Positions 35,039 to 49,675 of a DNA stretch of 64,000 nt are shown here, piece after piece. The notes under the pieces are model-generated. The model was not told where the DNA came from, ran no database searches, and was given only the letters and a program-made list of their open reading frames with translations. Location: contig NC_043026.1 of assembly GCF_006345805.1 (NCBI RefSeq), positions 3,348,001-3,412,000 on the forward strand, written 5' to 3'. The stretch is from Octopus sinensis. Lineage: Eukaryota. The translations under genes were made by a program, and so were the position numbers. The first letter of the stretch is position 1; each line of letters opens with the position of its first letter.

Positions 35039-35862
35039 AGATGTCTATGAATTGTACAAGATTTGGCTGCTATTTCTAGCTATGGAAGAGAGTTATCTAT
35101 GATTTAAGCGAGATCTGGTTGCTGTTTCTAGTTATGGAAGAGAAATCACTATGTTTCGTGCCAGATTTGGCTGCTATTTCTAGCAATGAAGAGATGTCCA
35201 TAATTTGTGCAAGATTTGGCTGCTATTTCTAGCTATGGAAGATAGTTATCTATGATTTAAGCGAGATCTGGTTGCTGTTTCTAGTTATGGAAGAGAAATC
35301 ACTATGTTTCGTGCCAGATTTGGCTGCTATTTCTAGCTATGGAAGTGAAATGTCTATGATTAGTGCAATATCTGGTTGCTATTTCTAGCTATGGATGAGA
35401 GATTTCTATTATTTGTGCAAGATTTGGCTGCTATTTCTAGCTATGGATGAGAGATGTCTATTATTTGTGCGATATCTGGCTGCTATTTCTAGCAATGGAA
35501 GAGATGTCCATAATTTGTGCAAGATTTGGCTGCTATTTCTAGCTATGGAAGTGAAATGTCTATGTTAGTTCGATATCTGGCTGCTATTTCTAGCTATGGA
35601 AGAGAGATGTCCATAATTTGTGCGAGATTTGGCTGCTATTTCTAGCTATGGATGAGAGATGTCTATTATTTGTGCGAGATTTGGCTGCTATTTCTAGCTA
35701 TGGAAGAGAAATGTCTATGATTAGTGCGATATCTGGCTGCTATTTCTAGCTATGGATGAGAGATGTCTATTATTTGTGCGAGATTTGGCTGCTATTTCTA
35801 GCTATGGAAGAGAAATGTCTATGATTTGTGCGAGATTTGGCTGCTATTTCTAGCTATGGAAG
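35039..35862 (+). repeat. 52-bp tandem array, ~16 diverged copies, in putative intron 1 of ZNF gene 1
   Basis: Unit ATTTGTGCGAGATTTGGCTGCTATTTCTAGCTATGGAAGAGAGATGTCTATG; period 52 (e.g. 35641 to 35693). Confidence 0.95.
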
Positions 35863-36867
35863 CCACATCCTCCATCGTTGCTGTGTTTGTTGTGTTTTGA
35901 GAAATATTCTCAAATACACCCCAACCGCTGAAATGTTGAGAAACCAATACTTTATTATTATTATTTATCGAATGTTTCTTGATATAACTACCGATGTGTG
36001 CTCACTCAACTAGCAATTTGATTCGTCATAACTTCGGGAAAAATGGATATTTTTGGTAATGAAATTTTCTAGAAATACTTTTCAGACAATGTGGATTACG
36101 AATATGTTGGAATTTGTTGTGAAAAAAATATAATTGGGAGAAAGGGTTACATGTTTTATGTCTTCGACTTTGTTTCCTCATATATTTTAACGACACAACT
36201 GTTCCCCACATCTGTCTTGTTATGAGGTGATGCAGATCAATCACAGGGAATATTGTGTGTCGCATGTATCTACGTACAACTCTTTATCTGTCTACCTCTG
36301 TCTCTTATGCTTTTCTCTTTGCGAGCTTTCACCTTCTATATATTTACCACATTCTCTCTCACTCTTTCTCTCTATATGTATATCTCTCGTGCTGATATTT
36401 GTATATGTCTTGAATCTGCAATTTTTAAGTAGTTTCTGTGTCTTACACTGTTGTTTCTTTATTATTTCAGGACATATCAAATGACATTGGGGTAACTGAA
36501 GATATTTCAAAATTTTTATCGTGTTTTGAAGACAAAGAAAATGCTATTGAAAGCAGATATATAATACGATTTCTGTAAAGTTATCATGGCATTCCAGTGC
36601 AATATATGCTCTGTTATTATTATCGAACGTTCCTTGCATTTCTGACTACAGTGTCAACAAAACGAATTTGTGTGCAAATTAAACTTGGATAAATTGAGAA
36701 AAAAGTTCTGAGACAAAGGTAACATTGGACAGAAATACAGTGATTGAAATATTGGCAAGGTATAACCTATAAGAACAAAATAAAAAATATATGTTTGCGT
36801 ATATATATTTATATATTTATCGTCATCATCATTATTATTATTATATATTGATTTGAAAAGAAAAATT

Positions 36868-38190
36868 ATGGATAAAAGCGAGAAACATACCGAATTGATT
36901 TTACCTGAAGACATGATAAAAGAGAGAAGTAAATTATCCTATGACTGTGATATCTGTGAAAAGACATTCTCTCTAAAAGGTAATTTGACTAAACACAAAC
37001 GTATTCATACAGGAGAGAAGCCATATCATTGTGATATCTGTGGTAAATCTTTCTCTGGGAGTACTGCCCTAACAATACACATACGTATTCATACAGGAGA
37101 GAAACCATATCGCTGTAATATCTGTGACAAATCATTTTCTCAAAATATTGACTTAAATAAGCACATTCGTATTCATACTGGGGAGAAGCCATATCATTGT
37201 GATATCTGTGGTAAATCATTCTCTCAAAGTGCTGTCTTAACTACACACAAGCGTGTTCATACGGGAGAGAAGCCATATCACTGTGATATCTGTGGTAAAT
37301 CATTCTCTCGAAGTTATCACTTGACTTCTCACAAACGTATTCATTCAGGAGAGAAGCCCTATTGTTGTGATATCTGTGGTAATTCATTCTCTGAAAGTAG
37401 TGTCTTAACTAAACACAAGCGTATTCATACAGCAGAGAAGCCATATCATTGTGATATCTGTGATAAATCATTCTCTGTAAGTAGTTACTTACGTAAACAT
37501 AAGCATATCCATACAGGAGAGAAGCCATTTCACTGTGATGTCTGTGACAAATCATTCTCTGCAAATAGTGACTTAACAAGACACAAATTTGTTCATACAG
37601 GAGAGAAACCATATCATTGTGATGTCTGTGGTAAATCATTCTCTGTAAGTAGTTACTTGGCTGAGCACAAAAGTTTTCATACAGAGGAAAGGCAATATCT
37701 CTGTGATATCTGTGGTAAATCATTCTCCAAATTTGGTACATTAACTAGACACATTCGTAGTCATACAGGAGAGAAACCATTTCATTGTAATATTTGTAGT
37801 AAATCATTCTCTGGAAGTAGCGACTTTACTAAACACAAACGTATTCATTCAGGCGAAAAGCCATTTCACTGTGATATTTGTGATAAATCATTCTCGCAAA
37901 GTTATAACTTGACTTCTCACAAACGTATTCATACAGGAGAGAAGCCACATCACTGTGATATCTGTGGTAAATCATTCTCTGCAAGTAGTAACTTAATTTC
38001 TCACAAACGTATCCATACAGGTGAAAAGCCATATGCCTGTGATATCTGTAGCAAATCATTCTCTCAAAGTAGTGACTTAACTAAACACAAACGTATTCAT
38101 ATGGGAGAGAAGGCATATCACTGTGACATTTGTGGTAAATCTTTCTCTGAAAGTCATAAGTTAAATAAACATACATCTACACATATGTAA
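36868..38190 (+). CDS. C2H2 zinc-finger protein (ZNF gene 1), 440 aa, 15 tandem fingers, no KRAB/BTB/SCAN domain
   Basis: Intact ORF of CxxC-x12-H-x3-H units with TGEKP linkers; first ATG at 36868; acceptor TTATTATTTCAG ending 36470. Confidence 0.95.
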
Positions 38191-38580
38191 GTGCAACTAT
38201 ATCAATGTCAAAACTTATAACAACAATAACAAACATTTTAGGCATCATCTGATGTAAGGGTAACCTTGTGCATTTTGCTATACAAGTAACTAATCCACTC
38301 GATATATCACCCACTTTTTAGGTTTGACATTTACTGATGCCAACCCCTTTACTTACCTCTTACTGTATGCCAGAATATGGTTTACTTTAAAAATTTGTTT
38401 TATGGAAAACAAAAATGGAAACATCTATAACTGCAAATGTTTTTATATAAGGAAGGAGTTTGATAATAACCTTCCAACACTATAGTTTTTATCTCTACAG
38501 CTATATCTCTATTGATGAGATAGTTTACCTCTGTGATATTTTTAATAAAAGTAATTTCTCCCAAACTTTGAATATGTTAC

Positions 38581-39021
38581 TCTTTACTCTTTTACTTGTT
38601 TCAGTCATTTGACTGCTGCCATGCTGGAGCACCGCCTTTAGTCGAGCAAATCGACCCCGGGTCTTATTCTTTGTAAGCCCAGTACTTATTCTATTGGTTT
38701 CTTTTGCCGAAGTGCTAAGTGACAGGGACGTAAACACACCAGCATCGGTTGTCAAGCAATGCTAGAGGGATAAACACAGACACACAAACATACACACACA
38801 CATACATATATATATATATATATATATATATATATATTTATATATACAAACATATATACGACAGGCTTTTTTCAGTTTCCGTCTACCAAATCCACTCACA
38901 AGGCATTGATTGGCCTGAGGCTATAGCAGAAGACACTTGCCCAAGATGCCACGCAGTGGGACTGAACCTGGAACCATGTGGTTGGTTAGCAAGCTACTTA
39001 CCACACAGCCACTCCTGCGCC
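38581..39021 (-). mobile_element. SINE family A, full length
   Basis: Reverse complement of 1582-1984 with an expanded internal (TA)n. Confidence 0.85.
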
Positions 39022-48010: not shown

Positions 48011-48400
48011 TCTCTTTTACTCTTTTACTTGTTTCAGTCATTTGACTGTGGCCATGCTGGAGCACCGCCTTTAGTCGAGCAGATCGACCCCGGAACTTAT
48101 TCTTTTGTAAGCCCAGTACTTATTCAATCGGTCTCTTTTGCCGAACCGCTAAGTTACGGGGACGTAAACACACCAGCATCGGTTGTCAAGCAATGCTAGG
48201 GGACAAACACACACACACATATATATATACATATATACGACAGGCTTCTTTCAGTTTCCGTCTACCAAATCCACTCACAAGGCATTGGTCGGCCCGGGGC
48301 TATAGCAGAAGACACTTGCCCAAGATGCCACGCAGTGGGACTGAACCCGAACCATGTGGTTGGTTAGCAAGCTATTTACCACACAGCCACTCCTGCGCCT
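48011..48400 (-). mobile_element. SINE family A, full length, between the divergent ZNF promoters
   Basis: Reverse complement of 1582-1984. Confidence 0.85.
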
Positions 48401-48898
48401 ATGTATAATATTTATATATTATTTTTTTAGGGAATAAAAATTCCGGGATCTTTGATTTTAGCTCAATAGAGGCAATAGGATTGGTTAAAATTCGAAAACG
48501 TAGCTTAATTCGAAAAATTAAGCTACGTTAAACTTACAAATTACAATTTTCTCAAGAAAGCCAAGAGAAAAAAAAATGTGGAATCCAATGTAGATCCCAA
48601 CAAATATCTTACAAACTATAGAATTTTCTCAATAAAGCCAAGAGAAAAAGATGTTTTATAAACACATTCTACCAGTATACGAAGTTTAAAAGTGTTTAGT
48701 TAACTAGAAATTGTGTTAAAAATCTGCCGGTCAAAGCGAAAAGATCCAAATAAAGTTTGCCTTTCACCTTTTTGCTGGGGTTCAATAAAATAAATACCAG
48801 TTAACAACTGAGGTCCGCGGTAATCGACTTACGCACCCTCCCCTCCCCCGAAATTGCTGGCATTGTGCCAAAATGTGAATATCTCACACCTATTACAT

Positions 48899-49062
48899 AC
48901 GCATGCGCACTAAGCCTATTTCCGCTTCTATTCATTACATCTTGACAAGCTTTGTTTGGCGCCAGAATTTCTATTAATTCACTCGGCAATACATTTATAA
49001 AACATTTCTCTACCACCTGACGCACTCATAACAACGACACCATCTTTTATAAAGACATTTCC
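48899..49062 (+). promoter_or_regulatory. Putative promoter motif and non-coding exon 1 of ZNF gene 3
   Basis: ACGCATGCGCAC at 48899-48910 and GTAAGT donor at 49063; exon and donor flanks align with the other two paralogs. Confidence 0.62.
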
Positions 49063-49675
49063 GTAAGTATTAAACAATGAAAACATTTAATCTTTCAATA
49101 ATTCGTGTATCAGATTTTGTTCCACATTTAGCTGCTATTTCTAGCTATGGTGGCTACCTTCTACTCTCTCCATCGTTTCCTCTTAAGTTTGTTGGGTATT
49201 TTAGTTGGAGAAATATCCCAAATACTCTACAACCCCAGAAATGTTGAGAAACGAATGTTTTATTATAATTTATCGAATGTTCGTTTCTTGGTATCGGGAA
49301 GGGGAAGAAATAGTAAGCGGGGCAAAATGAGTAATTTCTTATTATTTTCTTACCATTATGACATTGGTTAGAAAGATTTCAACTGAAATCATTGTAGGTT
49401 TTAGCCAGAATTATTCTAAAGGACATTTCAGAACTCTTCTGGAAACTTCCGTGGGATGTTATAAAATCCTGGGCTTTTTTTTCCGATTTTTACTTAGTGA
49501 ATCGCTTGCTTTCTGGAAGCTACTCATTCCCACATAGTTCTTGTTTTGTAAAATTAAAGATACCCGACGTTGCTTTCCTCCATAATGACCAAAAGTCATA
49601 AAGTTATAAACTTGAAGAAAGAAAGCCTTGCATATTCGTTCTACACCCGTTTCATGTGTGTATGTAAAATCGGTT

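Follow-up and report, generated by a model that had tools for sequence, protein, structure and literature searches.

Octopus genomes contain well over a thousand recently duplicated C2H2 zinc-finger (ZNF) genes. Here we describe a 52-bp repeat situated in the first intron of three such paralogs, which are clustered in a 64,000-nucleotide stretch of the Octopus sinensis genome (the window; assembly GCF_006345805.1, contig NC_043026.1, positions 3,348,001 to 3,412,000 of the forward strand), and we follow it through further members of their subfamily and into Octopus vulgaris. From base 1 to about 34 kb the window holds chiefly transposon open reading frames (ORFs), with an assembly gap (a run of N) at about 33.7 kb inside a LINE-like (long interspersed nuclear element) ORF just upstream of gene 1; the three ZNF genes follow from 34.8 kb on. 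ZNF clusters of O. sinensis have been reported on chromosomes 14, 27, 28 and 30 (PMC9795677), and the window record, CM016888.1, would correspond to chromosome 27 if accession order follows chromosome order. The window agrees with this record of assembly GCA_006345805.1, identity being 100% over the 19,191 bp that begin at window position 44810.

The three paralogs share one architecture, namely a putative exon 1 that is short and non-coding, followed by intron 1 and by an exon 2 that contains the whole coding sequence (CDS) preceded by a leader of about 350-400 nt. Exon 1 and the promoter of genes 1-3 are putative, as suggested by conservation and by splice signals: what we read as exon 1 with its donor is a conserved segment ending in ACATTTCC / GTAAGTATTAAAC (the slash marks the predicted splice junction) upstream of each intron 1, and the intron 1 acceptor is pyrimidine-rich and conserved (TTATTATTTCAG), with both donor and acceptor contexts kept in the paralogs. 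The main features, in window coordinates, are as follows.

34964 to 36470, plus strand: gene 1 intron 1 (predicted), 1507 bp, donor CC/GTGAGT at 34964, acceptor TTATTATTTCAG ending at 36470
35037 to 35862, plus strand: array 1, in gene 1; Tandem Repeats Finder (TRF) period 52, 16.0 copies, 82% matches, score 1106
35863 to 36040, plus strand: conserved post-array flank of gene 1 (CCACATCCT...GAAATGTTGAGAAACC...), aligning with 49154-49300 and with four sites of locus L003 at 74-81% identity
36471 to 38190, plus strand: gene 1 exon 2, leader 36471-36867, intact CDS 36868-38190 (440 aa, 15 C2H2 fingers)
43853 to 45272, minus strand: gene 2 exon 2, leader 45272-44925, CDS 44924-43853 with a frame broken in the O. 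sinensis assembly
45273 to 47444, minus strand: putative gene 2 intron 1, 2172 bp, donor GT at 47444, containing array 2 and a short interspersed nuclear element (SINE) at 45548-45944
46280 to 47340, minus strand: array 2, in gene 2; TRF period 52, 20.3 copies, 95% matches (units 94.5% alike), score 1933
49063 to 54451, plus strand: putative gene 3 intron 1, 5389 bp, enlarged by insertions at 49672-51596 and 53622-53949 that are missing in O. vulgaris
49106 to 49150, plus strand: single unit of gene 3, spanning consensus positions 7-51 but lacking about 10 nt internally
49154 to 49300, plus strand: post-unit flank of gene 3, homologous to the gene 1 post-array flank (BLAST, MAFFT)
54452 to 55925, plus strand: gene 3 exon 2, leader 54452-54809, CDS 54810-55925 (371 aa, 12 fingers)

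The host genes, whose finger ORFs encode 15, 11 and 12 fingers, display the 84-bp finger period, the TGEKP linker and the clustering of paralogs that characterize the octopus lineage-specific C2H2-ZNF class. The gene 3 protein is recorded in identical form for O. sinensis and for O. vulgaris, in the latter case from assembly GCA_951406725.2 (locus L002); exact look-ups gave no match for either the gene 1 protein or the truncated ORF of gene 2. The gene 2 CDS carries two 1-bp deletions, both AAA to AA within CACAAACG, and its O. vulgaris copy is intact (357 aa), so that the frameshifts are either a long-read homopolymer or assembly error or the mark of a very young pseudogene.

Array 2 is the reverse complement of array 1, each array thus reading in the sense of its own gene. 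The 52-bp unit is AT-rich (about 40% GC) with one CpG per unit, and its 20-nt core GCTGCTATTTCTAGCTATGG (up to 4 mismatches allowed) has 16 matches in array 1, 19 in array 2, a single one in gene 3 (49131-49150) and none in the remainder of the 64 kb, for a chance expectation of about 0.1 match per 89 kb of shuffled sequence. The original prediction, made from the letters of the window, had described about 16 diverged and about 20 homogeneous gene-oriented copies in genes 1 and 2, which the TRF values bear out. It had also placed one partial unit of gene 3 at 49126-49150; the string ATTTAGCTGCTATTTCTAGCTATGG is indeed located there, and alignment extends this single unit upstream to 49106. The arrays or unit begin 73 (gene 1), 104 (gene 2) and 43 nt (gene 3) past the donor GT, with 63 nt from the gene 3 donor to ATTTAGCTGCTATTTCTAGCTATGG, in keeping with the predicted distance of 60-100 bp. 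Array 1 by itself represents 55% of gene 1 intron 1.

Both arrays display the internal organization of a minisatellite, with head-to-tail units whose length falls within 10-100 bp, interspersed variant units and higher-order blocks. The higher-order repeat of about 150 bp that had been noticed in gene 1 is real: units 1-3 of array 1 recur as units 4-6, a shift of 3 units (153 bp) at which identity is 98% and 96%, and this 3-unit duplication occupies the 5' end of the array, the 3' units being more homogeneous. Array 2 is built on a 7-unit block (97.3% identity at lag 7 vs about 94% at other lags). The variant GAGAGGTGTC is found in nearly all units of array 2 and is missing from both array 1 and gene 2's own first unit, which indicates that at least the bulk of array 2 postdates the split between genes 1 and 2. 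The two arrays are about 85% identical to each other, with a longest shared exact stretch of 48 bp. Such a combination of higher-order blocks and array-specific variants is typical of unequal exchange.

The position of the repeat in the intron is homologous between paralogs. The segment 35896-35976, downstream of array 1, matches 49205-49281, downstream of the single gene 3 unit, with 81.5% identity over 81 nt (E=3e-15). The earlier claim of an orthologous position hence holds for genes 1 and 3, with the refinement that the sequence following array 2 showed no alignment with the gene 1 or gene 3 flanks using MAFFT.

The occurrence of the unit beyond the window was explored in about 190 kb of further DNA, reached from four octopus ZNF proteins (P0072, P0133, P0218 and P0224). 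In O. sinensis, locus L003 (CM016862.1) contains five tandem genes with 3, 2, 1, 2 and 3 units, and locus L006 (CM016876.1) two genes arranged head to head that have 4 units each. For all seven of these occurrences the host is a paralog from the subfamily of genes 1-3, the site is its intron 1 and the sense is that of the downstream ZNF exon 2. The unit is thus associated with ZNF genes, and no dispersed copy was found in the sampled DNA. The post-unit flank is conserved after five of these seven; in the L003 copy L3_d flank homology stops about 45 nt past the unit, and the sequence downstream of L6_a, in locus L006, is unalignable. The upstream part is kept by L3_a and L6_b, which possess the same donor (ACATTTCC / GTAAGTATTAAAC) and the same pre-unit segment of about 100 nt as the window genes, the distance from donor to unit being 73-104 nt in genes 1 and 2 (W_g1, W_g2) and in these two paralogs. 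This placement in gene sense between homologous flanks indicates that the 52-bp element is a heritable part of intron 1 in one ZNF subfamily. Neither the unit nor a comparable intron array was found in the loci of other subfamilies, L004 (O. vulgaris) and L005 (O. bimaculoides). Wider protein searches (full-length and 187-aa queries) were dominated by generic poly-ZNF proteins; a 43-aa profile of the family-specific N-terminus yielded four candidates, none of which scored, and hence no further paralogs or O. bimaculoides orthologs, and a scan of metagenomes with a 25-nt core returned 0 matches.

Two of the L003 copies deserve a separate mention. L3_c has an intron 1 acceptor changed from AG to AA (L003 22467) and a degenerate first finger, and is probably a pseudogene. 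L3_b retains the units and the post-unit flank, but the next gene is reached without passing an exon 2 that belongs to L3_b.

Large arrays are unusual in this family, only 2 of 10 genes having one. Across loci, unit subtypes follow ordinal position more than they follow neighbouring units. The first units have GTCCTTGATTTGTGCGGG in common, the second units L3_a2, L3_e2 and L6_a2 cluster together, and among third units L3_a3 and L3_e3 are 90% identical, L3_e3 being 87-89% identical to W_g1_03/06 and L6_b3. Position-specific subtypes shared across chromosomes point to an ancestor that already had a differentiated array, and the subfamily ancestor probably carried about 3-4 units, a reading that 52-nt comparisons make suggestive rather than conclusive. 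If the ancestral array was this small, the single units of gene 3 and L3_c would be contractions and the arrays of genes 1 and 2 expansions. The original proposal of a single element expanded in two paralogs and not in the third would accordingly hold as to the expansion in genes 1 and 2, but need revision as to the starting point, most likely a small array, and as to gene 3, which would have contracted, in a family where other paralogs have 1-4 units.

Array turnover can also be followed in O. vulgaris, whose locus L002 is collinear with window positions 42874-64000, unique sequence being 98-99% identical. The orthologous gene 2 array has 34.1 copies in O. vulgaris (L002 3059-4834, 95% matches) vs 20.3 in O. 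sinensis. When each distinct unit sequence is given a letter, the unit-type map reads ABCDEFGFHIJEFKFLIMNF in O. sinensis and OPQEFRSTTUFFVEWXFXRYRVEWZXaXZXFXIF in O. vulgaris; only 3 unit types are common to both, the block patterns differ, and the commonest O. vulgaris variant, GAGAAGTG, is missing from O. sinensis. While its flanks diverged by only 1-2%, the gene 2 array underwent changes of length and of unit composition alike, and these copy numbers and variant maps, set between collinear flanks, identify it as a fast-evolving variable number tandem repeat (VNTR), as had been predicted. Copy number thus varies between orthologs (20.3 vs 34.1) as well as between paralogs (1-20 units). The single gene 3 unit, for its part, is identical in the O. 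vulgaris copy (L002 core at 6616). Since the arrays are present in two independent assemblies, and short versions of them on other chromosomes, an assembly artefact was ruled out.

Taken together, these observations lead us to consider the 52-bp repeat as most likely a family-specific and near-neutral intronic minisatellite, inherited by descent within a young ZNF subfamily. From the patterns above we infer both its mutational mechanism and the neutrality of its expansions. Some 100 nt into intron 1, the subfamily ancestor would have had a small tandem of about 3-4 already differentiated copies, which would have been carried along by gene duplication within and between chromosomes. Most gene copies would have stayed at 1-4 units, gene 3 shrinking to one truncated unit, and genes 1 and 2 would have grown to 16 and 20 units (34 in O. 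vulgaris) via replication slippage and unequal exchange of multi-unit blocks (of 3 and 7 units). Homogenization within arrays would have given each its own variants, with copy number and internal composition changing far faster than the flanks. The expansions are most likely neutral or nearly so; their main consequence would be that, in genes 1 and 2, array sequence accounts for about half of intron 1. ORFs are intact with 1 unit (gene 3), 16 units (gene 1) and 34 units (O. vulgaris gene 2), gene integrity being independent of copy number. Furthermore, the 64-kb window contains, according to TRF, no fewer than 9 non-coding arrays whose period is ≥33 bp, and this abundance of minisatellites gives any single one of them a low prior probability of being functional.

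Two other possibilities for the nature of the arrays were rejected. A coding array was ruled out because 52 is not a multiple of 3 and a stop codon is met on running into the next unit. A structured RNA or microRNA cluster was ruled out by the folding of two-unit segments on both strands, whose z-scores relative to shuffled sequence were +0.64, -0.44, +0.03 and +0.27, and by Rfam, which gave no match inside either array (E≤1).

Several points nonetheless weigh against this explanation. The 19-nt core ATTTGGCTGCTATTTCTAG shows 0.58 changes per column in array 1 vs 2.12 in the rest of the unit (Fisher p=2.5e-6), the corresponding values for the O. vulgaris array being 0.37 and 1.03 (p=0.008), and is the best-conserved part of the unit across paralogs; this preferential conservation is a weak hint that selection could act on a candidate binding site. 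The putative transcription start is no more than about 250 bp away from the unit, and introns often contain regulatory signals so close to the start. Lastly, all 12 gene copies sampled were reached through ZNF proteins. A cis-regulatory array whose effect depends on copy number, in which each unit provides a candidate site (the 19-nt core) for a transcription or chromatin factor and multiplication 70-100 nt downstream of exon 1 raises or lowers the transcription of the paralog, would account for the core being spared in the old array 1, in the O. vulgaris array and in the paralogs, for a promoter-proximal position fixed in every paralog that retains exon 1, and for the large copy-number gap between sister species at one ortholog. 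It could act as an intronic enhancer platform or by nucleating heterochromatin, as proposed for the VNTR of ZNF558, a precedent for a cis-acting ZNF-linked array (bioRxiv 10.1101/2020.08.18.255562). However, the unit as a whole is no better conserved than adjacent non-coding sequence: mean paralog identity is 75% for the units, 74.5% for the exon 2 leader and 81% for the post-unit flank, hence no excess conservation of the whole unit. Descent alone explains the fixed position and orientation, turnover has been rapid without visible consequence for the ORFs, and the core p-values are overstated because the core was picked post hoc and the units, being related by duplication, are not independent. 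We therefore regard a regulatory array as possible but doubtful. Its more specific version, in which ATTTGGCTGCTATTTCTAG is a candidate factor site in a control region of the subfamily and the 1-34 copies act as a rapidly mutating "volume knob" of expression, appears to us quite unlikely; if true, it would diversify the expression of similar young ZNF paralogs, already differing between O. sinensis and O. vulgaris, and would represent, on a small scale and in an invertebrate, what the ZNF558 VNTR switch is in great apes. Within the unit, CTATTTCTAG is what we take to be a near-match to the MEF2 consensus CTA(A/T)4TAG and TTGGC is presumably an NFI half-site, neither of which is relied on here.

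The original prediction had gone further in suggesting that the encoded ZNF proteins themselves bind the unit, feeding back on their own gene or being titrated by a decoy array. The suggestion stems from the co-location of repeat and ZNF genes, and 12-15 fingers could in principle read 36-45 bp, which is near the unit length. Yet the three proteins have very different specificity residues and share the same unit, and recognition-code motifs (helix positions -1, 3 and 6), derived for gene 1, gene 3 and the O. vulgaris copy of gene 2, gave a best per-position p of only about 3e-4. The motifs were scanned as sub-arrays of 4 fingers, of 6 fingers and of full length over about 0.8-1 kb per array; with 24-48 combinations of sub-array, array and strand in each setting, such a value is no more than chance predicts, the recognition code being a crude method of low power; we consider self-binding to be highly improbable. 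An inversion of the interval between the arrays, also envisaged originally (as an 11-kb interval), is hardly more plausible. There are indeed two inverted arrays of 0.8-1.1 kb, about 10.4 kb apart, and recombination between them would invert an interval containing the bodies of genes 1 and 2. An identity of about 85% with a longest exact match of 48 bp is however a poor substrate for homologous exchange, the event would exchange the promoters of two convergent genes, and every aligned piece of the region has the same orientation in O. sinensis and O. vulgaris, whose sequences run in parallel across gene 2 and across array 2 with its outer flank; no inversion was seen at the array 2 junctions in the two assemblies compared, a sample that a rare polymorphism would escape. 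The least probable origin, to the point of being barely tenable, is that of an internal array carried by a transposable element (TE) and inserted independently into these introns. TE-borne minisatellites do fill octopus DNA, as illustrated by the 62-67-bp arrays at 39252, 61219 and 63280 and by the 157-bp arrays of a foldback element at 49700-51572. Against this, every copy of the 52-bp unit is at a homologous position with homologous flanks and in gene sense, one-copy and low-copy states exist, and the arrays have neither terminal repeats nor target duplications. All 10 sites lie in gene-specific intron flanks, with no copies elsewhere in the window or in loci L002-L006 (about 260 kb) and none outside the intron 1 context in the about 190 kb of other sampled DNA. 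An inherited, near-neutral minisatellite remains our preferred explanation.

The putative promoters of the three genes each carry a sequence resembling the GC-rich NRF1 palindrome, GCGTGCGC of gene 1 aligning with GCGCATGCGC of gene 2 and CGCATGCGCA of gene 3.

34821 to 34828, plus strand: remnant of an NRF1-like GC palindrome, GCGTGCGC, in the putative promoter of gene 1, 143 bp upstream of the exon 1 donor (regular expression)
47559 to 47568, minus strand: NRF1-like palindrome GCGCATGCGC of gene 2, about 120 bp upstream of the exon 1 donor (regular expression and alignment)
48900 to 48909, plus strand: NRF1-like CGCATGCGCA of gene 3, 163 bp upstream of the exon 1 donor (sequence reading and alignment)

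Outside the window, in L3_a and L6_b, the palindrome is degenerate or missing. The exon 1 donors of genes 2 and 3, which face head to head, are 1.6 kb apart (47444-49063), and L6_a and L6_b are arranged likewise (L006 3075-4128); the duplication unit of the subfamily may be a divergent-promoter gene pair.

The same introns have received other insertions. The tRNA-derived SINE at 45548-45944 in gene 2 intron 1 is missing at the orthologous O. vulgaris site, and similar copies are found at 48200-48400 and elsewhere. Gene 3 intron 1 contains a foldback-type element of 1.9 kb (49672-51596), with inverted arrays of 157-bp units at 49700-50123 and 51155-51572 separated by a spacer of about 1 kb; O. 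vulgaris is without this element, which reflects either a recent insertion or a deletion in O. vulgaris. A near-perfect palindrome of 328 bp (53622-53949), resembling a miniature inverted-repeat transposable element (MITE), lies in the same intron and is again missing in O. vulgaris. Further downstream, the 947 bp at 56322-57268 are likewise specific to O. sinensis, and 59702-63435 consists of large local tandem duplications (a 443-bp unit repeated 2.3 times at 98%; repeats of about 2.5 kb) in more copies than in O. vulgaris. As for other minisatellites, an unrelated 50-bp unit, GTCACCTGATAGTCAAAGTGTCACCCGATTGGATGAGGAGGCGAAAGCTA, forms 17 copies that are 94% alike at 2272-3119. A recurrent tandem unit of 62-67 bp (GGTGCTTTTTACGTGCCACCGGCAC...) is present at 39252-39437, 61219-61439 and 63280-63559 of the window, at 14223-14826 and 5593-5710 of L006 and at 22759-22994 of L005, in loci of three species; it is evidently carried by a dispersed element, to judge from its distribution, and would be a common source of minisatellites in octopus DNA.

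The interest of the 52-bp repeat lies in its occurrence at one promoter-proximal intron position in 1 to 34 copies across paralogs, which amounts to an allelic series made by nature. Should copy number affect transcription, this would be a cheap and fast route to regulatory divergence of young transcription-factor genes, and would also provide the O. vulgaris species complex with a convenient marker. Should it be without effect, as we hold most likely, the family provides a clean example of the birth, contraction and expansion of a minisatellite, and a warning that conspicuous promoter-proximal arrays in repeat-rich genomes may be non-functional. No description of the 52-bp repeat was found in the octopus genome papers searched, among which Albertin et al. 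2015 did not figure.

Tandem repeats associated with recently expanded ZNF genes are known in other forms. Beta-satellite surrounds the KZNF clusters of human chromosome 19, and Albertin et al. 2015 reportedly found a 70-90-bp tandem repeat enriched in the flanks of octopus C2H2 genes. These satellites share with the present case the association with expanded ZNF genes, and differ from it in being intergenic and thought to promote cluster expansion, whereas the octopus unit has a 52-bp period and is confined to intron 1 of one subfamily; its arrays measure 0.8-1.8 kb, unlike beta-satellite-type arrays, which are intergenic and reach tens of kb or more. TRF scores the finger-coding regions themselves as 84-bp tandem repeats (36940-38154, 43724-44798 and 54909-55837 in the window, and likewise in L004 and L005), a behaviour that may bear on the 70-90-bp figure, and surveys of 70-90-bp repeats near ZNF genes must exclude finger arrays and finger pseudogenes.

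Two human or ape VNTRs adjacent to ZNF genes offer further parallels, that of ZNF558 being the closest documented precedent and that of ZFP37 a looser one. The ZNF558 VNTR of great apes has a 7.46-kb unit in 24 to >70 copies downstream of the gene; it is marked by H3K9me3, and CRISPR interference (CRISPRi) demonstrated its effect (bioRxiv 10.1101/2020.08.18.255562). Common to both cases are a tandem array beside a lineage-specific ZNF gene and a copy number that differs between close species, and the ape array supplies a model of cis-regulation; the octopus unit is instead 52 bp long, in arrays of at most 1.8 kb within intron 1. The ZFP37-associated VNTR (ZAV) at human 9q32 consists of 5.3-kb GC-rich units with CpG islands, in 3-31 copies, extragenic and transcribed (PMC3018141). 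It too is a tandem array near a ZNF gene (ZAV being polymorphic and within 2 kb), with a suspected, unproven influence on that gene, whereas the octopus unit is AT-rich, intronic and has one CpG.

The nearest relatives in kind are the classical intronic minisatellites, with units of 10-100 bp, which are known from numerous vertebrate genes. Head-to-tail and variant units, higher-order blocks, an older array more homogeneous at one end, rapid copy-number change and a non-coding location within genes are all common to them and to the octopus arrays. What sets the octopus unit apart is that it was inherited at a homologous intron position by a family of paralogs spread over at least 3 chromosomes, giving 12 "alleles by paralogy", and that its variation is known here between species. 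In kind it is an ordinary VNTR, of which the family-wide copy-number series and the difference between sister species make a tidy test case.

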